Shown here piece by piece: positions 10,790 to 64,000 of a stretch of 64,000 bases of DNA. Both the position numbers and the translations under genes were made by a program. This DNA is from Epiperipatus broadwayi (taxonomy: Eukaryota; Animalia; Onychophora): contig JAQFVV010000005.1 of the NCBI GenBank assembly GCA_028023455.1, forward strand, positions 18,290,001 to 18,354,000, given 5' to 3'. The notes under the pieces were generated by a model, which saw nothing but the letters and a program-made list of their open reading frames with translations, was not told where the DNA came from and did no database searches. Each line of letters begins with the position of its first letter. Position 1 is the stretch's first letter.

Positions 10790-11457
10790 CCCAACTAAAT
10801 TGAGGTAAAATATTTATTTAAAAAGTATTACCGAAAGATTCATTATAATGAATTAGAAGAAGTTAATAGTTACAAATACCTTGGTCGGATTATTAATACA
10901 GATGGAAACATAATGGAGGAAATTAATCATAGAATTAAACTTGGTTGGAGTGCTTTTGGTAGAAATAACTTGATACTAAAAAGAAATATGCCTATGGGTT
11001 TGAAAAGGAAGTTTTTAACAAATGTGTTTTACCAGTTCTTACTTATGTATCTGAGACTTGGACACTTAATAGAAGAGCAATATAAAGATTTCAGACCACT
11101 CAAAGAAGTATGGAGAGATGTATGTTGGGAGTAACAAGAAGAGATTGAAAATGCAATGTATGGGTAAGAGAACAAACAGGTGTAACTGACCTCATTGAAA
11201 AAATTAAAAGATTGAAGTGGAGTTGGGTTGGACATATTGCTAGAAGAGATGATAATAGATGGACAATTGAAATTTTAAACTGGATTCCAAGAGATTGTAA
11301 AAGACCCAGAAAGATACCACATGTGAGATGGAGGATGAAATAAGAAAGTGTGCAGGGGTGATGTGGAGAAGAGAAGATAAAGATAAAAGAAGATGGAATA
11401 AACTTGGAGAGACCTTCATCCTGCAGTGGAGTGATAATGGTTGATGATGATGATGAT
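10790..11457 (+). mobile_element. RTE-clade LINE, 5'-truncated 3' fragment
   Basis: Translates (with frameshifts) to ELEEVNSYKYLG...EEINHRIKLGWSAFG...KWSWVGHIARRDDNRWT..ILNWIPRDCKRPR, the typical RTE C-terminus. Ends in a (GAT)n tail. Confidence 0.9.
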
Positions 11458-12247: not shown

Positions 12248-12634
12248 TAATTACTCTTTTTTAAAAAGCCTATTCATACAATTGAAAACATTACTAAGAT
12301 AATTCACAGCCAGATCACCAAAGAATCATTTAAATGAACTTGCAAATAACATTCACCTTTTCTTATATCAATACCAATCTATTTGGCAGATAAAAACTTC
12401 ACTTTATCTGGATGCAGTTTGTTACAATCAATCTTTGATACTTAAAAAGACTGAAACGTTTCATTAGTGGTATATTTTAATCAAGTCAGCTTACAGTTTT
12501 AAATATGGATTCATATGAATTTTCAATTAATTTTAAAAAGCATATAAATAACTTTGCAGCTTACCAAATATGTAACACTGATAATATAAATCTATTCATG
12601 AACTTATAATCCATAAAGTTATTTAAAGGTTTAA

Positions 12635-13066
12635 AATTGTAATACATTAAAGATCAGCCATTCAAGCTATTGTGCATGTGCTTTTTATGAGTGTTAATAA
12701 TAAATGAATACTTTCATTCCTAACATGAGATATAGCATTTATGAAAGAATAAAATGAATCCACTTATTCTTTCCAACCCAGATAATTTCGTCGATGTCAT
12801 TCATTCAGATATCATAAACAGTAATTTAAAGTGAGTGGTTTATCCTCACGCTTTCATTTCCAGTACTTAAGATTTGCCCATATATAAGCATTTGGGTCCG
12901 AAAGAATAAGTGGATTCATTTTATTCTTTCATAAATACTATATCTTGTGTTGCGAATGAAAGTAACCAGTTATTATTAACACTCGTAAAAAGCGCATGCA
13001 CAATAGCTTGAAAGGCTGATCTTTAATGTATTACAATTATAAACATAGGCTATATAAAATAAATGC
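12635..13066. mobile_element. Fold-back insertion, family P2
   Basis: Inverted arms about 12635-12780 / 12893-13042 with a spacer of about 110 bp. 16-bp TSD TTATTTAAAGGTTTAA at 12619 and 13067. Unpaired 3' extension 13043-13066. Confidence 0.8.
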
Positions 13067-16159: not shown

Positions 16160-16875
16160 ATATATTTATTTAAATGCACATTGATTATGTAAGTAATATT
16201 TACTAAGGCTGTAACCTCAAACATGTGCATGTAAAATGTGATAGTAGGGACCTCTACAGGTTTTAACCACAGCTTAAGTTTTGGATGAAAAGAGGGGAAT
16301 CCTTCTTTACTTCAACCTACTTTCTATTTAAATAGGTGAAGCTGAAGCGGTTTGATCTGCGAGCATGAAGCTATTCAATACTTCATTGATTAAGTCCACA
16401 TTTCTTATTACACATTAATATTCACAAAATCTTTCGATTTACGAGTCAATGGAAAGATCTTATTTTACACGCACATGTTTGAGGTTACAGCCTTAGTAAA
16501 TATTACTTATGTAATCAATGTGCGTTTAAATAAATATATAATTACAACTTTAAATTATCGTAATAGATTTTTAACTATAAAATCTTTCCATTGACTCGTT
16601 GTAAATCGAAAGATTTCACAAATATTAATGTGTAATAAGAAATGTGAACTTAATCAGTGAACTATTGAATAGCTTCACGCTCTCAGATCTAACCGCTTCA
16701 GCTTCACCTATTTATATAGAAAGTAGGTTGAAGTAAAGAAGGGTTTCTCTCTTTTCTTCCAAAACGTAAGCCCTCTTTTCTTCCAAAACGTAAGCTTGTG
16801 GTTAAGATCTGTAGAGGTCCCTACTATCGCATTTTACACACACATGTTTGAGGTTACAGCCTTAGTAAATATTAC
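16160..16875. mobile_element. Complex fold-back insertion, family P1
   Basis: Arms about 16192-16460 / 16583-16875. The centre holds an extra inverted copy of the terminal about 85 bp (16461-16545). There is a 23-bp internal tandem (CTCTTTTCTTCCAAAACGTAAGC x2). 16-bp TSD TTAATAGTGTTTAATT at 16144 and 16876. Confidence 0.8.
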
Positions 16876-23944: not shown

Positions 23945-25658
23945 ATATTATAAAGGTTGAGGATGTGAAATAAATGAATGAAGAGAAATTTAAGTGTTTA
24001 AAAATGGTTATATAATAATAAACTTGAGAAAGGTGGATTGAAAACTAGGAATTTTTGTAAAGAATCTGAAATATATTGTTGCTGATGTGTTTGTAGATAA
24101 AAAAAGAATTAGAAGAGATAAAAAGAATTAATAGGTTTCATGAAAGGGAAAAAGAATATCGTAGTAATTATTATGTTATGTTGATAGATAGTATAGTTGA
24201 CAGAGATGAATAATCAATGAGGTAAATTGAGTAGATTGAATAGGATCTTAAAAAAACAATTATGAAAGATAGTAATCATAAAAGTTATAAAGAATGGATG
24301 AATATGATGAAGAAAATTGCAATTGAGTTGTTATTTAGAATGAACAGAATATATAAAAAAAGAGAAAAACTTTAGAAAGTGTACAAAGAAAGAAAGAAAA
24401 AAGACATAGTAAATATAAATAGGTTGCTAAAAGCAAATGGAGAAATGATAAAGGTTAGATAGGCTACTATTTTTAAAAAAGAAATAATTAAAATAGAATT
24501 AAGACAGAAATGAGTGACCTTAATAAGAAATTAACAAAAGAAATTAATACAGTGAGAAGAGGTGATTGTTAAATTTTTTAGAGATATATGTAAAAAAGAA
24601 TATTGTATTATTAAATGTAAAGGGAAGTGGGTGTGAGATTAGGGAAGAACTTGAATAAATTTTATAATAAAAACCTTGGGAAAGTAGGGATAGTAAGCGA
24701 ATAGTATTCATTAGAGTGTTCAATTTATAAGAAAATGAATTTAGTGATGGATGCAGAATTGAATAGAGCGATAGATAGATTAAAAAAGAGAAATCAAAAG
24801 AACTAGATGGGATGGCAACTGAAGAAGTAATAGGTAGAGGAAAGCTTAATTTAAAAGGTTTTAATATAATTATAGTTGATAATAAGATTCCAAATGAATG
24901 GAAGAATATAGAATTAAGAAAGAAGAAGATTTTAAATCGTTAACTAGCTATGAATCAAAAGCAATAACTTCCATGATTTATAAATTATTTATCTATATCT
25001 TAATGGGTAAAGTTAGAAAATGGATCTAAAAGAATGAAATTTTGAGGGGCATTAAGAATGAATCTCTTTCAGGAAGGAAAAGGGGGATATATTATACTTG
25101 TACTTCAGTTGAATAAAATCATTATTTACTGCATTTTTAGATGTAGAAAAGGCTTATGGTAGGGTTGATAGAAGTACAGACAGTGTAGAAATCTTAAAAA
25201 TATAGGAATATATTATGCAGGATTATTAATATTGATTGAAAGTCTTTACAAAAGTAATTTTTTTATTGGAGAATATAGAAGCAGTAGAAGTTAAATCTGA
25301 AATTGGATTGCAACAAAAATGTCTATTATCAACTTTATTATTTATTTTTTTCTAAGGAATTTGGGATTAATATAAAGATTAGGAATGAGTATTCCTATAA
25401 ATAAAGCCAAGATAATACTTGTGATGTGTTTGGTGTGTGTGTGGTAGTGAATTTATTGACAACAATATAGATATGAAGTTGTATTACAGACAGGTGAAGA
25501 ACTAGAAGAAATATAAAAATTAAATTCAATGAAGAAAAATCTAGATTCCTAGTACTTAATGAGAAGGATAAAACTGAAAGTGAAAAAATAAGATATTTAT
25601 TTCAAAAATTTGGAGTATGGCTATATTTCATATCTTTTTTATATAATAAGTTATAAAG

Positions 25659-25852
25659 AGAGCTCGCAAATAAGTTTTTAACAAGCTTTGCAGAATATCC
25701 CCAACCCCAGACCAGTTTCTGATACTGGCTTCCTCAGTGAGGTGCTAGGATATTCAAGCATTAGATTCAAAATATCAGGACAAGCCCAGCAAAAACTGGT
25801 CTGGGATTGGGGATATTCTGCAAAGCTTGTTAAGAGCTTATTTGCTAGCTCT
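25659..25852. mobile_element. Fold-back insertion, family P5, with hammerhead-like motif
   Basis: 60-bp arms 25659-25718 / 25793-25852. Minus strand 25705-25742 reads CCTCA-CTGAGGA-AGCCAGTATCA-GAAA-CTGG-TC-TGGGG. Confidence 0.7.
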
Positions 25853-27203
25853 ATATATTTGCAATACAAGTTTATTAAATTAGGTCATATGACATATGAC
25901 TTGATTTTTTTTAAAATAAACATAAGATATACAGAATTATTTAAAAAGAAGTGATGTTGCCTAGTTTAATGTTTAGAAATGGTAAGCTTTGCATTGACCA
26001 AGAACTCAGAAAGTTTTAGATAGGATTCAAAGAGAAGTCATTAACTATGCAGTCAGTGATGAATTCACACAGCGAAAAAGCCTAGTCGAGGTGAAATGGG
26101 GTGAACTTCTTTTTTTAATGAGAAAAATTTTTAAATAAATTAAAAGTGTTTGGAAGGCTTCAATAAATGAATGAAAAGAAATTAGTAAATATAGTGTTTA
26201 ATCAGATTATGCAGAGAGAAAAATAAATGTGTGGGCAAAAAAATAATAATAATTTTCAACATACAAAGTTATAAAAAAGTTATGTCTGTGCATTTATATA
26301 AGAAATGTGATAAATATATAGAGAAGGTATTATAGGTATATAATTATGAGGGGTTGGGAAAAAAATAAACACAATGGTGAAAGAAAAAAAGGAGAATTAT
26401 AGAAAATGAATATGAATAAGCAAATAATAATTTGAAGTTGTAATAAAATATAAACAGATATATAATAATAGTAGAGGCAATTTATTGTTAGTTAGTGTAA
26501 GGGTGAAGTTTTAGGTGCCAGAAGGTATCAAAAATAAAACGAGAATTTGGATTATATATATAGTTTATATTCAGATGGAAAAGAAAATAGTGAACACTAA
26601 TTTTTAGAGTTTAGGATATTGAAAGAAGATTAGAATAAATTGTAGAAAAAGTAGGAGAAATTTAAAGGCAAAAAAATGAAAGAAGGATAGATCTCAGGAA
26701 CTTTTATAATCTTTAAAATGAAATTGGGGAATATGAGGAAAAGATAGTTTAATTAACAAAATAAGTTTTATTAAAATGAAATCAAAGAGAAAAATAAGGA
26801 AATAAAAAGATTCAGAGAATGGAAAAAAAATTCTGTAATAAGAAGTAAGAAATATCTGAGTGTAAGTAGTGAATAAAGATTTTTGAGGAAAGGAATGTTT
26901 ATAGCTTATACACAGAAACTTCTGACTTTGTTTAAAGAAAAGCCATTTTTTCTCACAACAAGAATATCTATACCTAACAGCATACAATAAATGTGATGTA
27001 AATTTTTTTTGTAAGTATCAATTTCACAAATTCTAGTCTCTCTCCATGTTTCCTTCTTCAAAATCTTTTTTTGGAATTCATAATACTAAGTATTTAAATT
27101 TTACAGGCCATTAGTTTAAAAATACAAGTATAAAATGAATAGTGAAAGGATTCAAATAAATTAGCTTAAAACCACAAAAAAATATGCAAAAATGTATTTA
27201 ATT

Positions 27204-33365: not shown

Positions 33366-33995
33366 TCATTGTATTGGCCAGGAACAACTAATCGGAAAGC
33401 TGGTTAATTTTGAATTCATAGCACAAGATGAATTTTGTATAATATATGATTCTTTAATCTTGTGTTTTTTATCATGTGTTTCATTCATTAATATTGTAAA
33501 ATCCTTTGGACTACATATATGGCCTGAATTATTTTGGTGAACATAAAAAGCTGAATAAACTGTATCATCTTCTCTTGCTCTATTATAAGTATATTTATGT
33601 TGTTGAAGGCGATATTTAATATTTGTTTTGGTTTCTCCAACATATATTGCACTACAGTTTATTTGTGGGCAACTAATAGAGTATACAACACTGCTTTTAT
33701 CCTCCTTATTTATTATTTCCTTAGAATTATTTATTAACCTATTAAGGTTAGGTGGAGTTCTCCATGCTAATCGAAAATCTTGACTTAAAACTTTTATTAT
33801 ATTTTTATTAATATTGGGAATAAAAGCTAATGACATCCATGGTTTATTATTCATATTTATATGGTCACTATTATGATGTTGTTTATAATGCTTCAATACA
33901 GTAGATAATAGCATTTGTTTATTATAACCCACTTGTATTAAATCTTGCATATAACATTTTATATTATCTTTCATAAACATTTCATTTGAACACAA
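33366..33995 (-). CDS. PLE ORF C-terminus: RT linker plus GIY-YIG endonuclease (truncated, stop-free 209 aa)
   Basis: SSVVYSISCPQINCSAIYVGETKTNIKYRLQQH...H...KESYII matches the PLE GIY-YIG pattern VVYxIxCxxC...YVGET...R..xH...E. Confidence 0.85.
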   Translation of the reverse strand: MCSNEMFMKDNIKCYMQDLIQVGYNKQMLLSTVLKHYKQHHNSDHINMNNKPWMSLAFIPNINKNIIKVLSQDFRLAWRTPPNLNRLINNSKEIINKEDKSSVVYSISCPQINCSAIYVGETKTNIKYRLQQHKYTYNRAREDDTVYSAFYVHQNNSGHICSPKDFTILMNETHDKKHKIKESYIIQNSSCAMNSKLTSFPISCSWPIQ

Positions 33996-38050: not shown

Positions 38051-39007
38051 ATGCCCTAAATGGTTTGGTCAGTGGTATAATGTCAGACTCAAGTACAAGA
38101 TCCTCAAATCAATATCATGTTCTCTGGGCAATGGTCTATGCTTACGAACTAATAACTTTAAATAAATAATCAATCAAACAAGATTGAAATAAACAACTAT
38201 TAATAATTATATTTAAATATTTATCAAACCGGCTTTCATCTCCACTGAGATCTTCTCAAGATATTATATTATACAATTCATATAAACAAATAAGAATATT
38301 CACTCCATCTACTGGACATTATTTACATTATATTTCATTTTCTTTTTAAACATGTCCATATATTATACATAAATAAATTTAACATATTATACATCTAAAA
38401 ATTTTAACAAAATCCCCCCCCCCCAAAATAATAATAATAATAATAATAATAATAATTAAATATATATTTTACATCTTTTAAAAAAAATAAAATAAATAAA
38501 TAAATTGGTATTTACATATGTACAACCATTTCCTACACTTTCCAATTGTTTAATAAAGCCCATTTCCCACCTAATTTAGCTGGACCTTTTACTATATTTA
38601 CACATTTGTCTAAGTTTTCTTGAATATATAATGTTTCATAATATATTCTCTTATGGTAATTCTTTACATACTTAATAGCACTTATATTTTCCTCACACTT
38701 CATTTTATGCCCTGTATCCAAATAATGCAAATATAGCCCTGATCTCATGTCTTTTCTATTAATTGCTCGATCATGTTCCTTACCTCTCTCTCCCTGTCTG
38801 TCCTATATACATTTTATTGCATTTTACACAGCTAATTTTATATACCAGCCCCATCATACTACTAACATCATTTAACTCTTGCATTATGTAACCATTTACC
38901 CAGGGACTTATTATTGTTCCAAGCTATTTTTACATTACTTGGCAATTTATCTTTCATTAATCTTTTATATACTTTTTCTGAATATGGAATAGACATCCAT
39001 TTACTAC

Positions 39008-39115
39008 CTCTATACCTATTCCTGTTATCCTCATTTACTTTATCTCTATACCTATTCCTGTTATCCTCATTTACTTTATCTCTATAACTATTCCTGTTAT
39101 CCTCATTTACTTTAT
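39008..39115. repeat. 36-bp tandem x3, present only once in the other palindrome arm
   Basis: CTCTATACCTATTCCTGTTATCCTCATTTACTTTAT at 39008, 39044 and 39080. Confidence 0.9.
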
Positions 39116-39319
39116 CTACTTGGCAAAGTAGATAAAGTAAATGAGGATAACAGGAATAGATATAGAGATAGTAAATGGATGTCTATTCCATATTCAGAAA
39201 AAGTATATAAAAGATTAATGAAAGATAAATTGCCAAGTAATGTAAAAATAGCTTGGAACAATAATAAGTTCCTGAGTAAATGGTTACATAATGCAAGAGT
39301 TAAATGATGTTAGTAGTAT

Positions 39320-39642
39320 GATGGGGCTGGTATATAAAATTAGCTGTGTAAAATGTAATAAAATATATATAGGACAGACAGGGAGAGAGAGGTAAGGAAC
39401 ATGATCGAGCAATTAATAGAAAAGACATGAGATCAGGGCCATATTTGCATTATTTGGATACAGGGCATAAAATGAAGTGTGAGGAAAATATAAGTGTTAT
39501 TAAGTATGTAAAGAATTACCATAAGAGAATATATTATGAAACATTATATATTCAAGAAAACTTAGACAAATGTATAAATATAGTAAAAGGTCCAGCTAAA
39601 TTAGGTGGGAAATGGGCTTTATTAAACAATTGGAAAGTGTAG
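39320..39642 (+). pseudogene. PLE GIY-YIG endonuclease fragment (frameshifted); mirror copy on - at 38533-38860
   Basis: GLVYKISCVKCNKIYIGQTGR..., then YLHYLDTGH...YYETLYI...N (ORFs 39427-39642 and 38533-38748). Confidence 0.85.
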
Positions 39643-39899
39643 GAAATGGTTGTACATATGTAAATACCAATTTATTTATTTATTTTTATTTTTTTTAAAA
39701 GATGTAAAATATATATTTAATTATTATTATTATTATTTTGGGGGGGGGAATTTTGTTAAAATTTTTAGATGTATAATATGTTAAATTTATTTATTTATAA
39801 TATATGGACATGTTTAAAAAGAAAATGAAATATAATGTAAATAATGTCCAGTAGATGGAGTGAATATTATTATTTGTTTATGTGAATTCTATAATATAA

Positions 39900-39941
39900 T
39901 ATCTTGAGAAGGTCTCAATGGAGATGAAAGCCGGTTTGATA
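39900..39941 (+). ncRNA. Minimal hammerhead motif, U3-A8 variant; mirror copy 38222-38263 (-)
   Basis: TATC-TTGAGAA-G-(A/G)TCTC A(G/A)TG GAGAT-GAA-AGCCGGTT-T-GATA. Confidence 0.65.
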
Positions 39942-40210
39942 AATATTTAAATATAATTATTAATAGTTGTTTATTTCAATCTTGTTTGATTGATTATTTA
40001 TTTATTTCTGTTTGTGACAACATTATGGACAAATAAATCATATTGGATATTTGACCATCATAGTGACTAATAACTTTGTTTAAAAAGAAAACAATTAACA
40101 TCATACCACATTACATCATGATATTTTAATGTAAATAAAATAATGAATCATTATTTTGAATCCATATATTTTTCATAGAAAAAGCAAAAAAAAAACTTTC
40201 TATGTAAGTA

Positions 40211-44617: not shown

Positions 44618-45050
44618 GTTGAAAAGGAAGGTTTTTAACAAATGTGTTTTACTAATTCTTACTTATGGATCTGAGCAATACAGAGACTTCAGACCACTCA
44701 AAGAAGTATGGAGAGATGTATATTGGGAGTAACAAGAAGAGATCGAAAACGCAATGTATGGGTATGAGAACAAACAGGTGTTACTGATCTCATTGAAAAA
44801 ATTAAAAGTTTGAAATGGAGTTGGGTTGGACATATTGCTAGAAGAGATGATAATAGATGGACAATTGAAATTTTAAACTGGATTCCAAGAGATTGTAAAA
44901 GACCAACAAAGAGACCACATGTGATATGGATGGATGAAATAAGAAAGTGTGCAGGGGGTGATGTGGAGAAGAGAAGCTAAAGATCGGAGATGGATTAAAC
45001 TTGGAGACCTTCATCCTGCAGTGGATTGATAATGGTTGATGATGATGATG
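44618..45050 (+). mobile_element. RTE-clade LINE 3' fragment, copy 2
   Basis: Co-linear with 11000-11457, with a 22-bp internal deletion; (GAT)n tail. Confidence 0.9.
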
Positions 45051-48782: not shown

Positions 48783-49466
48783 AAAATCAATGAAATATTT
48801 CGTGTTTCTCATTATTTTAAGAATGTGAATGAATATTTATTTATTTCTCTTATATCTAACGAATTATGCTTTAAAAATTAAAAATTTTTGAATATTTCTT
48901 GCAAAATTACAATATTTTCTTGATATTTTCTTACTTGTAAATAAAGTAGCTTGCTGACATCAAAGTAGTTTTATAATTTGCTTCAGGTCATATTTACATT
49001 AACTGCTAATATAACATTATATTTTTGAAAATTAAAGTATTTCAAGTCAAAATAAGTTATTAATATTTTTTATTTCTTGAAATCTAATAAATATAGTGCA
49101 AATTATTTTTAAAAAATATCTAAAACCATAATAAATTCACAAATAAACATGTTTTTGCATCATTGAAAACTTCAATGTCATAAAACACCAAATTTTTTAC
49201 AGCCTTGGCAACAGACAATGGCTGAATATGTCAGGAAGGGGCTTATGTCTATTGTTAGAGTGGGAATTTTGAATTTTGTGCTTTTTTTGCACAATTTTCA
49301 GCAAAAAAATTATTTTAATAAAATATACTGTTTTACATGCATTTTAACGTATATTACTTATGAACAAATTCACCAGGAGGAGAATTGGCCAAAAGACATT
49401 TCTAAGCTGTCCCAAAATTTGAAAAGGTTAAAGAAAGATTAAAGAATGAAAACTATTTTCAAACTT

Positions 49467-49926
49467 AAACAGAGCAAAACTCTCCATACAGTATTGTCAC
49501 CTGTTCTAAACAGAGTAATCAATGTATGCCAGAAGGCTTGTGCATAAAATCCCTATCTAATGCCTACTCATCCAATATCCCCAGACTAGTTTCTGGCTTG
49601 TGGCCTTCTTCAGTGAGGAGCTTTGGATCTGAGAGCACTGCATCTAGATCTTAGGATCTAATGCAACCCTCTAGCAACAACCTTTTATCTCTACTTAACT
49701 ACAAAACCATGAGAATGAAATTGAAAACACAAAAAATATTTTCAATCTAAGCTCAATAGCTTATATAGTCATATAGGCATTAGATAGGGATTTTATGCAC
49801 AAGCCTTCTGGCATACATTGATTACTCTGTTTAGCACAGGTGGCAATACTGTATGGAGAGTTTTGCTCTGTTTATCAACAATTAATGTGCTAGTATAGGA
49901 AATGTGATCATGTGATGCTTAATGGT
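49467..49926. mobile_element. Fold-back insertion, hammerhead-bearing family P4
   Basis: Inverted arms about 49467-49567 / 49772-49873 and an unpaired 3' extension 49874-49926. 13-bp TSD TATTTTCAAACTT at 49454 and 49927. Confidence 0.85.
49577..49619 (-). ncRNA. Minimal type I hammerhead ribozyme motif (best-preserved P4 copy)
   Basis: TCCTCA-CTGAAGA-A-GGC CACAA GCC-A-GAA-ACTAGT-C-TGGGGA: canonical core, GUC cleavage triplet, palindromic stem III and a 6-bp stem I. Confidence 0.75.
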
Positions 49927-50591
49927 TATTTTCAAACTTGTTAAAAATGATATTTTCTTATGCATAAAAGAATAGAAATATAATATTGGAACTTGAATTC
50001 TTTGGTGTATAAACTGTATCATATTCTATAACATAAAATATTTAAAATTATTTCTGCAAAAGCTATCTAGAAATAAATAAAGATAATTTTTGTGTATGCA
50101 AAACGTTATAATGTAAAATTGAAAAGAAAGCATTCAAATTTTTATTACAATCTTTGAAGTGAAAACTACTCAAGAAAGGAAATTCTCAAAGATTCTAATA
50201 ACATTATTTTACTTGTTAATTGATTTTTTATTTTATTTTTCTCATTAATAAAGTTTTTATTTACAAATGTATTGATTATTTCACACATTCACTACAATAA
50301 TAATGGAATAAAAATATTTTATTTCATGAAAAATATACAAACTGTGTACAGCTTATATATAATACTTGCTAATACAATAAAAAAAAATACTACACACACA
50401 ACCTGCAAAATACCCCCTCACAGCTCTGAAAAATGCTCTCCTATATATTATAACTGAAGTGTAGGATAACCAAGTAAATGAATATTTATAGAAAGTATGA
50501 GCTCTAGAAAATAATTACTAGTTTTATGTTATTTATGTTGTACTTTACTTCTGCTGCCAAAAACAGTTACTGTTGCAATATATATATATAT

Positions 50592-51180
50592 ATAATTGAA
50601 TATTTATAAATACAGTAATCAGATATATTTTAAAATTTTTATCCACTTAGTAGTGCTTTTGACTATCCTTGTAGTCTTTGTCAACTAATACTTTGAAAGG
50701 CTAACCTTCCCACAATTCCATGATCTTAATGTTTACTTCCTGCCTGTTAATTAAGTCATGTTTATATTTGTATATTAACATAGTTTCTTTTATTTTTCTT
50801 TTGTTATTTTTTTCAATTTGCAATATTTTGACATTGTTGTAATTGAAGTTAAAACCATAAATACATGAATAATAAGGTCATGAACAACAATGTTAAAATA
50901 TTGCAAATTGAAAAAATAACAACAACAAAAATAAAAGGTATGCTAATATACAAATACAAACATGACTTATTTAACAGGCAGGCAGCAAACATTAAGATTA
51001 TGGAATTGTGGGATGATTAGCCTTTCAAAGTGTTAATTGACAAAGACCACAAAGATAGTTGAAAGCGCTACTAAGTGGATAAAAATTTTAAAATATATCT
51101 AATTACTATATTTATAAATATTCAATTATTTAATTACATGTATTGCTTTGAAGAAATATAGACACTGAATTATAATTTTA

Positions 51181-57538: not shown

Positions 57539-57898
57539 GTAAATTAGGTAGACATTATCTTATGGTGTAAGAGTATGTGTCCTCATATTTTTACTAGGAT
57601 TTCATTCATTGCCTAAGTTCAAATAAAAGAGTGAAATTTTAATATAAATATTTAATTAAAGAATCCTGAGATCTTAATATTATAATCAATAATGAAAACG
57701 AAATTATTTTACAAAAGAAATCCTTTGAAGAAACAAGGTGGCACAAAATATAAAACATAATTCTTTATCAGATAATTGTGAAATGTGGATCTAATCATTG
57801 CAATGAAATATTGAGAATAGTGTTTGTTGAATGTGTTATTATTTGGAGGGGGATTATTATACGTGCTATGAGAAAAAATCTAATATAACCTAATTTAT

Positions 57899-58173
57899 TA
57901 TCATCATCAACCATTATCAATCCACTGCATGATGAAGGTCTCTCCAAGTTCACTCCATCTTCTCCGATCTTTAGCTTCTCTTCTCCACATCACTTCTGCC
58001 CACTTTCTTATTTCATCCATCCATCTCATATGTGGTATCTTTCTGGGTCTTTTACAATCTCTTGGAGTTCAGTTTAAGATTTCAATTGTCCATCTATTAT
58101 CATCTCTTCTAGCAATATGTCCAGCCCAACTCCACTTCAGTCTTTTAATTTTTTCGATGAGGTCAGTAACACC
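57899..58173 (-). mobile_element. RTE-clade LINE 3' fragment, copy 3
   Basis: Reverse complement of 11185-11450, with a (GAT)n tail. Confidence 0.9.
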
Positions 58174-58429
58174 GGCAGTATATGCTTTCTATATTAAGAG
58201 TATTTCTGTAATTCGTAATAGTTGAGAGTTCTACTCTGAAATTTTTATTAAATGTTAATTAGTATATTTACAATGCTTATTTATTGTTATTCTTAGCAAT
58301 ATGGCTCTTTTTATTATAGCATATATTATTTAAAGCTCTGAGCCAAGTCTAATATATTATTATTATACATCATTAATTTACAATTGTAGCCAACATATTT
58401 GACTTATTATATACTATATATATGTATAT

Positions 58430-59568
58430 TGTACCGGTATAAATCCACCACGCTTACTCATACACAGTACCCGAGTTCAAACCCAGTCCACGTTTAAGAA
58501 TAATTTCCAAAACGCCAACTGAATTCAAACCCAAACCCCGGTATGACTAACCGATGATGACTTTATAACAGCACGGGGTTATCCCTTTTCTAGCTCAGCT
58601 TAGAACATGGACTAAATTCTTACAGTTAATGATATATAGGTTTATTAGACTATAGATATTGGAACGGTCATTCATGTAACATATATATTTAAGTTGCCAA
58701 TACAGACAGAAAGTGGCTAAATAGACTTAGAGAGTAATAAGGTGGAGGACACAAAGATTAAGATTAAATAAAGTGTTTAATAAGCAAAATATAAAGCATA
58801 TAAATATAGTGTTAAATAAGACAAATAGAAAGCACATGAATATAATGTTATATAATAGAAATATACAGCATATAAATATAGTGTTATACAGTACGGTAAG
58901 ACTTCATAAATCCTCTTGTATTTGGCTACTAGTCTTTAGTGAACGTTTATTTAATGAACAAACTCATGCCAATAGCTGGGGAGTTAAATGATTGACGGGT
59001 GGTTAAGAGAATCAGAGTATTTGAGCACTGGAAAAATATTCATCTAAAGATTTTTATTAACTTATTTTATTAGAATAGGCTCGAGCCGTTACGTAGACGA
59101 ACAGTTGGAGGATGGTTTTATATAAAGACGACATAAAGGATAGATGTGCTGGTAGTTTTATATAAATACGACATGGAAGATAGATGAACTGGTGGTTGCC
59201 TGGATTCAAATGCCCTACAGTAATCACTTGCGGTGCATTAACGGAATACCGGGCGGCTTGTACTTTGACAAGGCTTAATGCCCCCAAGTAGCTCCGGGAC
59301 ACGACAACCAGCCGGGATCATTTCGAACCCCGGTGATCCAAGAGATTACCGGGAAAGAAAAACTGCTTTCATTCCCCAATGGTAGAATGGCGAGACACTA
59401 ACTTCAGCGAAGGGAAGGCATTGCCACAGACGTGAAGGACGAATACTTGCAGCGGATTTTTTTAAAAGAAATTATATAAAACCTGGAAACTATTTGTCTG
59501 TTTCTACGCCACAGGCTGAGATCCTTACCCCAATAAAACGTAGCGGACTTAAACTGACGGTGGCAACA
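58430..59568. repeat. Left LTR, putative 1139 bp
   Basis: The left end is fixed by homology with 63633. The right end is only inferred from ...GGTGGCAACA (TG...CA rule). Internal tandem units of about 36 bp x3 (58795-58890) and 40 bp x2 (59114-59193). Confidence 0.6.
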
Positions 59569-61207
59569 ATAATTAGTTAAATTTACTCTGAAACTCTAAC
59601 CCTTCGGGTTAACAGGCGGTAGCGATAGTATCAAATTATTCAGATAATTATTTCTCATATTATACATAACATTAATGTAACACTTTGAAACCATTATATA
59701 TATATATTTTAAGATCGAACCTTAGATTGCAATTATAGGACAAATTAACATAGACTAATAAAGTGACTTAACATTTATCAACTCGGAATGTGAAAGAATA
59801 TTTAATTCAGAAAATGAAATTACTTTTAAGATAACTTGATCATTATTGTACACTAGTTTTACTATTGACATCGTTTGTTTATGGAATAAGCAACACACAA
59901 AAAAAATATAAATGCATTCATTTAAATTATTATTACTATTAATTACAAATGTTATAAATTATTTCTAAAGACTAGAGCGGAGGATTTAAAAGAAAAGAAA
60001 ATTTACTGACAGGTTAAACAAAAGCATTATAAATGATATAAAAACTTACATATGATTTACTTGATTGATAACATTAAGCACGGAAGAAAGTTAAAGTTCG
60101 TGTAACACAGTTACTCTTCTTTCTTCATCCTGCTTGACTTGTGACGAACGTAGGCGCGCATTTTTGAAAGTTATTTGCAAGGCATAGTTAATTTTGAGAT
60201 TGGAAGTTGGAAATTCTGAGGTATATGAAACATGATCAAACAGCGGCACGAGGATCCATATTGGCGGGCAGAGACCAGCTCCTGGCAATTAGCCCATGAA
60301 CATGGCGATTCACTGATAAACTTCTTAATAATAAGGTTTGAATTATACTCAACTGCTGTGTTGTCTCGAGACTACTTCTCTCACACACGACCAAAGTTAG
60401 AATGTAAGTTTTTTTCTAAAATAGCCACTGCTGACCTTTCCGACTTGTTTTTGTTTTAGGCTCCGCCTACTTTCTCTAGCCTCTAGCGATGCAGCTTGAC
60501 CAATAATCAATTATCTGTTTTTAGCAATCTTTTAATTTAATATTCCACTTTTAAATCGGTACAGTAATTACATATAAAAATTCCTTACTAATTTTGAATA
60601 CAACTTAATTGCTCTGAACATTTGTGCAATTAGATTTTAATTAAAAACACTGATCAAAGGAATGTGATTTTTGATCAGTATTTTTATACGACTTTATACA
60701 ATTTAAAAAAAACTAAAATTCAAATAAATACGCCCGCACTGACACTTTAAATTAATTGATACAAATTCGCAAACCACGCACACACAAATATTATTTCATG
60801 GTTTGCGACATTTATATACGGCATCTTTACACATTGACTGATAAACTATAAAATATATAACTAATTTTTATATTATAACTTAAAATAGACAAAATCTCAC
60901 TGCGGGCGAACAGTAGTTTGAATTACCGTACATGAAAACACCTGAAACGAAGATCGGTTCTCCGATCTGTCTGTTTCATTTCTTGTCACTTTATAAAAAA
61001 AAACAACAAAAAAAAAAATGATTATACATAATTTCTGATTAACAGTTTTTCTTTCTCTTTTCACATAATTGATTGACCTTGGAGAACAGTCTGGGTGAGG
61101 GTTTGAACTTAACATTTATAAAGGTGGGTATATTACCGTAATTCCTTTTCTCATCATCATGTGCATGTCACAGTGGTCATTTTCCGGGTCATCATTTATT
61201 GCGATTT

Positions 61208-62485
61208 CTACCTTTTCCCTGGGTCGGGAGGTATATAAGGGTTATAGGTATGTCTTTTTAGATCTCTTACTAAAATAGCAAAAGCGGTCACCATATTGTG
61301 CTTTGGTATATTATTATATTGTTCATTATTAAAAGTATCTTGCTTTAAAAGAATTTCTCTAACTTTCTGTGATCTAATGGCATCCATTATAACATATTCA
61401 CTTTGGGAGTTAAGAAGTTTTTCTCCATTTTTCATGAAACTATTTTTTTCAACATATGTCCATGCTTTAAAACAAAGTTTATTATTTCTATTTAATGAGT
61501 TCAGCTCCTCATCAATTTTGTTCTGATCACATTTCATAAACAAATAATTATGGGTTTTATTAAAATGTGCAGCATTGTACACAACTAAAGATCTGTCCAC
61601 TTTCTTCATTTTCATATCAGGAGGCCATTCAGCATCATTTTTAAACTTTAACTTTGATGTCTTCATTAATCCACTTTTCCACAGAACATCTTTATAATTA
61701 TTATGAAAATATAACTTCTCATTAATTATGATTTCAGAAGATTCATCCGTAACAGTATGTATTGTTCTATTGATATTTTTCATCATCGATACAGCCACTC
61801 CATTAGAGGGTGGTAAACTGATATAATCACTTTGAAATGGGCTGGCTTGCAGTAAATTTGAAACCACCATTTCCTCAGTACTTTCTTCATTCTTGGCTAA
61901 ATCTGCTAGAGTAAAACTTTGACTATGAGTAATCTCTGTCAAATCTAATTCTTTACATTTTTGTTGAGTAGAGTTGGCATTTGTATTCACTAATCTAATC
62001 TCATGAGGTTCCAACCTTATTTTAGTTGGTTGAGGTTCTGTGTCCTCTGCTCCACTCCTCGCACTATTGCTTTCCTTGCTGTCCCCAACTTCTTTTGGGG
62101 TGGCCTGGTCATCTTCATTTTCTATTTTTGGGTCTTCAGAGGGATTTATTTCCCGCTGACGCCCTGCATTTTCTAGACTTGAGTCGGCTCGGATGCCCCG
62201 TGCCTCGTCGATCCTTACCAGCCTCTCCAACATCATCATTATAACCTTCCTGTCCTCTCTCATCTCTCTGAGGATCGCGTTAAACTTCGTATCGCGATCG
62301 TGCTCCCTCTGTTTGACGTTCCTCTCCGGTCGTCTAAAACTTTGTTTTTTATCCTGAAAATTTTTTAACACGACTTCATGGTCGCTGGATGTGTCCGACG
62401 TCTCTGCACCAGTCGCGGACACATGCTCGCTTTCTTCTATTGCTGTCATTTCTTTTTCGTTTTTACTTAGAAATGTTTTTAGCAT
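61208..62485 (-). CDS. Intact 425-aa orphan protein in the gag position of the LTR element
   Basis: ATG to TAG without interruption. Acidic, disordered N-half with a short coiled-coil-like stretch (about aa 55-95) and an apparently globular C-terminal region of about 180 aa. No CCHC knuckle or other motif recognised. TATATAAAAA upstream (62833-62842) and AATAAA just downstream (61195-61200) on the same strand. Confidence 0.8.
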   Translation of the reverse strand: MLKTFLSKNEKEMTAIEESEHVSATGAETSDTSSDHEVVLKNFQDKKQSFRRPERNVKQREHDRDTKFNAILREMREDRKVIMMMLERLVRIDEARGIRADSSLENAGRQREINPSEDPKIENEDDQATPKEVGDSKESNSARSGAEDTEPQPTKIRLEPHEIRLVNTNANSTQQKCKELDLTEITHSQSFTLADLAKNEESTEEMVVSNLLQASPFQSDYISLPPSNGVAVSMMKNINRTIHTVTDESSEIIINEKLYFHNNYKDVLWKSGLMKTSKLKFKNDAEWPPDMKMKKVDRSLVVYNAAHFNKTHNYLFMKCDQNKIDEELNSLNRNNKLCFKAWTYVEKNSFMKNGEKLLNSQSEYVIMDAIRSQKVREILLKQDTFNNEQYNNIPKHNMVTAFAILVRDLKRHTYNPYIPPDPGKR

Positions 62486-63597
62486 AAGACTTTGATTCGT
62501 ACAACGCTTTGATTTGTATATATCATAAAAGGTTACTGATCCCTGCTCCTTGTGCCAAATCCCCCTCCGCTGCTGATACTGTTTGTGTGGCTTACTTCCT
62601 TTCTCTCTTTCTTCCTTCGCCTACGTTCAGTCTGGTTTTTGTTACCTATGCTTTTTTTCCTTTATTTAGGAATATAATATGACATGTCTAAAATCATTAC
62701 TAAAAATATACAGGGGAAAAAAAAACTTTATTTCACCCAGTTCGCACTGTTCTCCTCAGTCCTATAATACATACATATTCATAATGGGTACATAACATAG
62801 TATTTTTTTGTATTTCTGTCAGTAATTCTCTCTTTTTATATATGCCACCCTACTCTCTTTTAAAACAACACTCGCCACTGCTGTATGGACAAACATGTTT
62901 GCTGACAAATTTATTTGATAGGCGCCAGCCAGCAACATGTGACCAATAGATAATTTAATCTACTGATCCCCAAATATATACTTTTATATGACCTAATAAT
63001 TTTTTGATTTAAGATTTATATAGGCAGAAAAAAATTTAATACTGACTCCGGTAAGGTTTTTTTTTTTTATATTACAACATATATATGCACACACGTGTTT
63101 ATTTCTAAAACACAAAAATAATCCTACTTCTTTATTCTTTTTTTCAAAAAAAAATATTTTTCACAACAAACGAAAATATATATATATATACGTACACAAA
63201 TATATATACGCGTACACGTTTTTATTTTTCAGAACTGGACTTAATTCTACTTCTTTATTTTTTCATTTGATTTAAACAACAAGAATGAACTCGCAAAAAC
63301 ATTATGGAATACTCATTTATTTTAATTAATTACACGCACGAATTGCTTCCGCTCTCTTTTCAAAAAAAATCTTCACTCTGTTTCTTAACAATATTTGAGA
63401 GTACTATATACTGATTCTTTATGTGAGGGAGAAAAAAAAATTTATATTACTTGTTTTACTACTATAATTTAACTTGCGCATTTTAATACGCCAAATACGT
63501 ATCGATATTATGACAAACGACACAAAAAAAATTGAATATTTTTATCATTTAACTGTTTACTTCCGTTCACTCTGCAGGGTGTGGGAGATTTCTTCAT

Positions 63598-63620
63598 CGA
63601 AGCACCACGGAGGGCGTCCA
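63598..63620 (-). promoter_or_regulatory. Putative primer-binding site related to tRNA-Lys(CTT)
   Basis: Minus strand TGGACGCCCTCCGTGGTGCTTCG compared with the Lys(CTT) complement TGGCGCCCAACGTGGGGCTCG (recalled from memory). It lies 12 nt from the LTR end. Confidence 0.55.
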
Positions 63621-63632
63621 AAATATAATAAC

Positions 63633-64000
63633 TGTACCGGTATAAATCCACCACGCTTACTCATACACAGTACCCGAGTTCAAACCCAGTCCACGTTTAA
63701 GAATAATTTCCAAAACGCCAACTGAATTCAAACCCAAACCCCGGTATGACTAACCGATGATGACTTTATAACAGCACGGGGTTATCCCTTTTCTAGCTCA
63801 GCTTAGAACATGGACTAAATTCTTACAGTTAATGATATATAGGTTTGTTAGACTATAGATATTGGAACGGTCATTCATGTAACATATATATTTAAGTTGC
63901 CAATACAGACAGAAAGTGGCTAAATAGACTTAGAGAGTAATAAGGTGGAGGACACAAAGATTAAGATTAAATAAAGTGTTTAATAAGCAAAATATAAAGC
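63633..64000. repeat. Right LTR (partial, truncated by the window end)
   Basis: 367/368 identical to 58430-58797. Confidence 0.9.

Follow-up and report, generated by a model that had tools for sequence, protein, structure and literature searches.

Several kinds of retroelement are mobile without encoding the enzymes of retrotransposition. In the mouse, ETn is a non-autonomous long terminal repeat (LTR) element whose interior has been swapped for unrelated non-coding sequence and which is copied by the autonomous MusD. In maize, Bs1 is an LTR element that lacks pol and has an open reading frame (ORF) assembled from pieces of transduced host genes (PMC13317346). Two further categories are LARDs, non-coding, non-autonomous LTR elements of more than 4 kb, and TR-GAG elements, which combine terminal repeats with a gag-only ORF (PMC13570524). 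Moreover, both LTR elements and Penelope-like elements (PLEs) carry foreign ORFs between their terminal repeats, with ORF capture documented for example in bdelloid rotifers (cited in PMC6431247). Here we describe an element at positions 58430-64000 of a 64,000-nucleotide stretch of contig JAQFVV010000005.1 (hereafter the window), in which two near-identical direct repeats enclose no detectable pol gene and a single intact ORF of 425 codons. The composition of the element is foreign to the surrounding DNA, while the ORF itself is a compositional chimera of two regimes. We consider it about an even chance that the locus is a recently inserted, non-autonomous LTR-type retroelement of the LARD/Bs1 kind, the ORF of which would consist of an element-type N-terminus fused to a captured, host-resident segment.

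Near-identical direct repeats and a composition foreign to the host

The repeats, and a tandem array associated with one of them, occupy the following positions, counted from the first letter of the window:

58430-58797, unstranded: left terminal direct repeat, in the part comparable with the right copy; recognised by pairwise identity, a sharp left boundary and a jump in CpG content.
63633-64000, unstranded: right terminal direct repeat, meeting the window end; recognised by pairwise identity with the left copy.
58765-58886, unstranded: tandem array of a 36-nucleotide (nt) unit, 3.4 copies with 81% matches, located within the left repeat or at its inner end.

The two copies are identical at 367 of 368 positions, the single difference being an A/G transition at 58644. 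Both open with TGT, and the similarity begins abruptly at their starts, which lie 5203 bp apart (58430 and 63633); the 30 bases upstream of each copy are unrelated to each other. A first-pass annotation of this DNA had described near-identical direct repeats, and the description holds: over the visible 368 nt they are near-identical long terminal direct repeats, as in a young copy of an LTR element. Because the right copy ends with the window, the repeat is at least 368 nt long; by eye, candidates for the inner end of the left repeat are found at about 58891 (...ACA) or at 58906 (...CA). The span of about 5.2 kb between the repeat starts is a typical size for an LTR element. Neither a second copy of the element nor a solo repeat was found elsewhere in the window, and an exact 24-mer from the LTR gave no match in the JGI metagenome contigs. 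The window also holds no empty-site paralogue, the upstream copy of an interspersed repeat stopping 256 nt short of the element.

The window is AT-rich, with a GC content of about 28% (27.7% in the flank at 1-58429). Over the 58 kb of flank outside the element the observed/expected ratio (o/e) is 0.31 for CpG and 1.18 for TpG/CpA, and across 800-nt host windows the CpG o/e has a median of 0.24 with a 5-95% range of 0-0.81. Such a loss of CpG, together with the excess of TpG/CpA, points to heavy germline cytosine methylation of intergenic and repeat DNA, and the host genome appears here to be of an AT-rich, CpG-depleted, animal type. The element, leaving aside the 3′ part of its ORF, contains 138 CpG against 138 expected (o/e 1.00), a composition foreign to the CpG-depleted host. 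The switch takes place at the left edge of the left repeat: the 1400 nt leading up to it contain 7 CpG, and the 200 nt immediately following contain 8. Because an undepleted element lies in a CpG-poor host and the change coincides with the repeat edge, the recent insertion of a mobile unit with a terminus at 58430 is supported, in agreement with the recent mobility proposed earlier (o/e 1.0 in the element versus 0.31 in the flank).

The same comparison bears on other origins of a unit bounded by direct repeats. The first-pass annotation had set a segmental duplication against its own reading; the CpG content of the unit and the switch at the repeat edge are at odds with a duplication of resident host DNA. 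A polydnavirus-type proviral segment bounded by direct repeats was dropped as well, as no viral relatives were found and the undepleted CpG does not suggest long residence. The composition contradicts duplicated host DNA, but not a tandem of a foreign unit. In that case the repeats would not be LTRs, and what we call the right copy would be the start of a second, head-to-tail copy of the 5203-bp unit, produced by tandem duplication, by insertion of another mobile or episomal element as a concatemer, or as an LTR-internal-LTR-internal array. The identity persists to the last base of the window with no LTR end marked, which favours a head-to-tail arrangement, and the candidate primer-binding site (PBS) and polypurine tract (PPT) described below are unconvincing. 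On the other hand, the repeat opens with TG exactly where the composition turns from host-like to foreign, and the size and layout suit an LTR element, so that we regard a head-to-tail tandem as quite unlikely.

An intact ORF with two compositional regimes

Reverse transcriptase, RNase H, integrase, protease, gag and env are all undetectable between the repeats, as judged by Pfam searches with the ORF and with six-frame pieces of at least 40 amino acids (aa). The 36 pieces other than the ORF, taken from stop to stop, gave two chance-level matches only (E 0.05-0.07), to unrelated families. The claim that the interior is pol-less is borne out at this level. About 3.5 kb of the interior is non-coding, and no recognisably broken gene is present in the element. 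The coding part is divided as follows:

61208-62485, minus strand: intact ORF of 425 aa, beginning with ATG and longer than any other in the 64 kb.
62060-62485, minus strand: 5′ part of the ORF, codons 1 to about 143, with element-like composition.
61208-62059, minus strand: 3′ part of the ORF, codons about 144-425, with host-like composition; candidate captured segment.

The frame is open for 470 codons from stop to stop, no open frame in 200 shuffled versions of the element being longer than 146 codons, and the runner-up ORF in the window has 209 aa. Because the open frame exceeds the shuffle maximum so far, the ORF is a real coding sequence, or was one very recently. Its product contains three cysteines in all and lacks a CCHC motif, as had been noted earlier for this intact frame. 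A long helix is predicted near the N-terminus (about aa 55-95); the middle of the protein is acidic and of low complexity, and the C-terminal part is rich in N and K.

The two parts of the ORF differ considerably in composition. The 5′ part has a GC content of about 0.46, a GC content at third codon positions of up to 0.76 and a CpG o/e of about 1, and 6 of its 15 arginine codons are CGN. The 3′ part has a GC content of 0.306 and none of its 10 arginine codons is CGN. In the segment 61208-62000 the CpG o/e falls to 0.22 (4 observed, 18.4 expected; Poisson P=6e-5 versus the rest of the element) and TpG/CpA reaches 1.21, and the dinucleotide distance to the host is 0.059, the lowest of any segment; the stretch 61286-62059 contains 2 CpG in 774 nt. 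Base composition alone is not responsible for this contrast, because the leader upstream of the ORF, with a GC content of 0.305, keeps a CpG o/e of 1.05. We also applied a synonymous CpG test that is conditional on the protein sequence and considers CGN for arginine, NCG codons and C|G codon junctions. CpG-creating synonymous choices were taken at 25 of 92 opportunities in codons 1-143 versus 4 of 130 in codons 144-425 (Fisher P=2e-7). In composition the ORF is therefore a chimera: its 3′ two-thirds look like DNA that has long decayed under host methylation, and the rest of the element does not.

The first-pass annotation had left the choice between a highly derived gag and a captured cargo gene. 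The cargo alternative is newly supported by the host-like CpG depletion in the 3′ two-thirds of the ORF, whereas no recognisable gag domain was found, and captured cargo is favoured over a derived gag because the ORF is a two-regime chimera.

Searches for relatives of the ORF product were negative throughout. The whole ORF matched no Pfam family at E<=10, and its two halves gave one chance match, to a bacterial pilotin, and nothing else. PDB sequence searches with the whole ORF and with its C-terminal part returned only noise and no capsid match. No relative was found in a word-indexed search of 5.8 billion proteins, no credible one in a HMMER scan of 1.84 billion representative proteins, and none among the IMG/VR viral contigs and the JGI metagenome contigs; exact look-ups of the product with two alternative starts found no record. 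The lone HMMER match (E=4e-4) was rejected as spurious, the target being a prokaryote-style protein with four near-identical repeats that summed weak matches to one 75-residue stretch of the query. In the collections searched, the gene is the orphan that it had been taken for. The AlphaFold model of aa 245-425, which had been proposed as the basis of a fold comparison, has a mean pLDDT of 33, too poor for meaningful fold matches. For the whole ORF the mean pLDDT was 39 (AlphaFold2 without an alignment), and the sole moderately confident feature was the long helix at about aa 55-95.

How well would an uncaptured gag account for these observations? In a TR-GAG-type element the whole ORF would belong to the element itself, as a gag that has diverged strongly, lacks a zinc knuckle and is kept because the element supplies its own particle protein; nothing would have been captured, and the CpG richness of the 5′ third would be due to a local constraint or to a cis-acting RNA signal that overlaps it. 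Gag-only non-autonomous elements are a known category (PMC13570524), diverged gags can be unrecognisable, and the putative 5′ LTR is followed by the ORF as the first and sole gene; the long helix and a helical C-terminal stretch of 100 aa, both predicted with low confidence, would also fit. A single gene long resident in an active lineage would not be expected, however, to show so sharp an internal contrast in synonymous CpG use. The LTR and the ATG are 1147 nt apart, and the searches yielded neither a Pfam gag at E<=10 nor a CCHC motif, a capsid match in the PDB or a relative among the 1.84 billion proteins. We therefore consider a diverged gag unlikely.

The composition of the 3′ part would also suit an ordinary single-exon host gene, or the gene of another inserted element, lying between two copies of a repeat under its own promoter. 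TATA-like, CCAAT and AATAAA motifs are plausibly placed for this: a TATA-like run is found at about 62834-62844 and an AATAAA at 61200-61195, 8 nt past the ORF stop, both on the minus strand. The TATA-like and poly(A) motifs had been cited earlier as evidence for a transcription unit. In the window as a whole, the density per kb and strand is 4.7 for TATAWAW and 3.3 for AATAAA, and because both are so dense their presence around the ORF is a chance expectation. The motifs are there, but they lose their value as evidence, and the “self-contained transcription unit” that was built on them is left unsupported. The 5′ third of the ORF and all non-coding DNA between the repeats are, in addition, compositionally foreign to the host, and no orthologue was found in any searched proteome. 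A plain host gene seems very improbable.

Candidate signals of the element and other features of the window

Outside the ORF, the interior shows the following features:

58892-61207, minus strand: non-coding interior 3′ of the ORF, CpG o/e 1.02, without a detectable protein domain.
59115-59197: tandem duplication of 40 nt, from a tandem-repeat search.
About 59200-59640: GC-richer patch.
62486-63632, minus strand: leader of 1147 nt from the right repeat to the ATG, GC 0.305, CpG o/e 1.05.
63076-63140 and 63199-63263: pair of 65-nt direct repeats in the leader.
63620-63605, minus strand: PBS-like candidate, a TGG-led, GC-rich 16-mer 12 nt inside the inner end of the right repeat.

The element most likely reads on the minus strand, in which case the 5′ LTR would extend from 63633 onward and the 3′ LTR from 58430 to about 58900. 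The cues for this orientation are weak: the strand of the ORF, the TGG-led 16-mer by the right repeat, a purine run by the left repeat and tandem repeats on the U3 side, the 36-nt array at 58765-58886 falling on that side if the element reads on the minus strand. The purine run, a weak PPT candidate, has 11 purines in 13 nt (minus strand, 58923-58911) and is near the candidate LTR end without abutting it; the 13 plus-strand nt that precede 63633 are rich in A and T but do not consist of purines only. A full-text literature search with the PBS-like 16-mer and the LTR-end strings returned unrelated primers only, and folding of the leader RNA revealed nothing unusual (z=0.64). A separate purine tract (30 of 32 nt; 62591-62622, minus strand) is located about 105 nt upstream of the ORF ATG, in mid-element and not beside a terminal repeat.

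Direct terminal repeats also occur in other retroelement classes, as Penelope-like pseudo-LTRs or as the split direct repeats of DIRS/Ngaro elements. A hammerhead ribozyme motif is expected in the terminal repeats of PLEs. An Rfam search at E<=1 over 58000-64000 found nothing credible, and neither a hammerhead ribozyme nor any other RNA family was seen in or near the repeats. Similarly, at the DNA level the element resembles nothing else in the window, not even the PLE-like pieces; a reverse transcriptase remnant is absent, and the six-frame Pfam scan of the element contained no remnant of a tyrosine recombinase. An origin in one of these classes is thus hard to credit, in spite of two points in its favour: the window seems to hold Penelope-like fragments (a GIY-YIG-like ORF at 33366-33995, by eye only), and a foreign module of 4 kb has been mobilised by terminal repeats of PLEs (PMC6431247).

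The ORF at 33366-33995 (minus strand, TTG start) is the second longest of the window with its 209 aa, and its C-terminal half resembles by eye the GIY-YIG endonuclease end encoded by Penelope-like retroelements. It matched no Pfam family at E<=10 and, used as a calibration for the 425-aa ORF, it was likewise without relatives in its length band (115-366 aa). Because this second ORF also found no relatives, the source lineage seems to be thinly covered in databases. A large, near-perfect palindrome spans 38159-40004: arms of 570 nt (38476-39045 and 39130-39699, 98%) are nested within arms of 269 nt (38159-38427 and 39736-40004, 97%), with a 36-nt tandem array at the centre (39008-39117). The arms contain mirrored open frames of 89 aa with a motif resembling that of the ORF at 33.4-34.0 kb, and the palindrome may represent two Penelope-like copies head to head.

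An interspersed repeat is present in three copies that are 90-95% identical (11075-11456, 44673-45049 and 57897-58173); the third is inverted and is the one ending 256 nt before the element. Beside the first, the frame 10799-11131 (plus strand) resembles, by eye, the C-terminal tail of a non-LTR (long interspersed nuclear element, LINE) reverse transcriptase, with no support from Pfam. Several short inverted-repeat pairs (12629-13044, 16272-16771, 49466-49874 and 50575-51146), with arms of 100-236 nt that are 86-98% complementary and loops of about 100-210 nt, resemble foldback elements of the miniature inverted-repeat transposable element (MITE) type. A strong strand asymmetry extends over 2 kb at 24001-26000 (GC skew 0.44, AT skew 0.15), and no tandem repeat scoring >=150 was found that could explain it. 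The window contained no tRNA genes, and an Rfam scan of its whole length at the gathering score gave no credible family.

Proposed origin and comparison with known systems

It is from sequence that we infer LTR identity, orientation, mobilisation in trans and capture, as well as any function of the protein. In the explanation that we prefer, a capture by a non-autonomous LTR element, the element has no enzymes of its own and would depend for its copying on the reverse transcriptase and integrase of an autonomous relative able to recognise its LTR ends. The roughly 140 N-terminal codons, which are CpG-replete like the element, may be the remains of its own structural (gag-side) gene. For the roughly 280 C-terminal codons, the loss of CpG and the gain of TpG/CpA would imply a long, germline-methylated residence in the host before uptake. 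Uptake could have occurred by read-through capture or by a template switch during reverse transcription; read-through transduction and template switching have been reviewed for plant elements (PMC13317346). Because the insertion is so young, the intact frame of this single copy says little about selection since insertion. In the lineage, a frame of 425 codons has been either maintained or assembled very recently.

We further propose, more tentatively, that an active, enzyme-less LTR element in an animal-type genome recently acquired about 280 codons from a lineage-restricted gene of the host, that these were joined in frame to what was left of the element's structural gene, and that the fusion now spreads as cargo. 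This version is possible but rather doubtful. If true, maize Bs1 or retroviral gene transduction would have a counterpart in an invertebrate, caught within roughly the time that one substitution per 368 nt of LTR takes.

Several points weigh against the capture of a host segment by an LTR element. The 3′ end of the LTR (CA), its length and the target-site duplication lie beyond the window end at 64000. The PBS-like motif is weak, being 12 nt off the LTR end, without a tRNA match and a candidate only, and the PPT candidate, equally weak, is a short run with no clear LTR boundary directly beside it. A second copy, a solo LTR or an autonomous partner was not found in the window or in the searched collections, nor did the HMMER scan of 1.84 billion representatives produce a relative of the ORF. 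“Orphan” seems to be a weak statement in itself, meaning only that the searched collections hold no relative. No host paralogue or donor of the C-terminal part was found, so that the proposed capture is drawn from composition alone, and the CpG contrast could in principle also arise if selection had acted differently on the two halves of a single gene.

If the capture is real, the locus would be a fresh case of a retroelement turning host coding sequence into a new mobile, multi-copy gene, a process that is well documented in plants and retroviruses and rarely caught young in animal-type genomes. Captured segments in heavily methylated genomes could then be recognised simply, without any alignment, by a CpG contrast of this type within an ORF. 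If the element is only a gag-only or LARD-like derivative, it is a matter of routine repeat annotation.

The element is probably a member of the known, gene-capturing kind of non-autonomous LTR elements, its membership among LTR retrotransposons having been partly tested here. By analogy, its closest functional counterpart is maize Bs1. Both are non-autonomous, with LTR-like repeats, no reverse transcriptase or integrase and a single hybrid ORF of element and host parts, the latter in our case according to the proposed reading. For Bs1, however, the host donors are known by homology, compared to a host origin suggested here by the CpG and dinucleotide signature only and no donor found, and its host is a plant, not an AT-rich, CpG-depleted, animal-type genome. 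LARDs share the size class (about 5.2 kb between the repeat starts), the lack of enzyme domains and the long non-coding interior of about 3.5 kb, but are non-coding by definition, whereas this element keeps an intact ORF of 425 codons. TR-GAG elements likewise have one ORF, terminal repeats and no pol; their defining feature is a recognisable GAG domain, and here neither a Pfam gag family nor a zinc knuckle was found. With ETn/MusD the element has in common an interior unrelated to retroviral genes, young and near-identical LTRs and a presumed mobilisation in trans, although the ETn interior is non-coding and its partner MusD is known, while no partner is known here. Finally, the LTR elements of bdelloid rotifers also carry a foreign ORF between their LTRs, but they stay autonomous, with gag-pol and an extra ORF, where the element described here has lost everything else.

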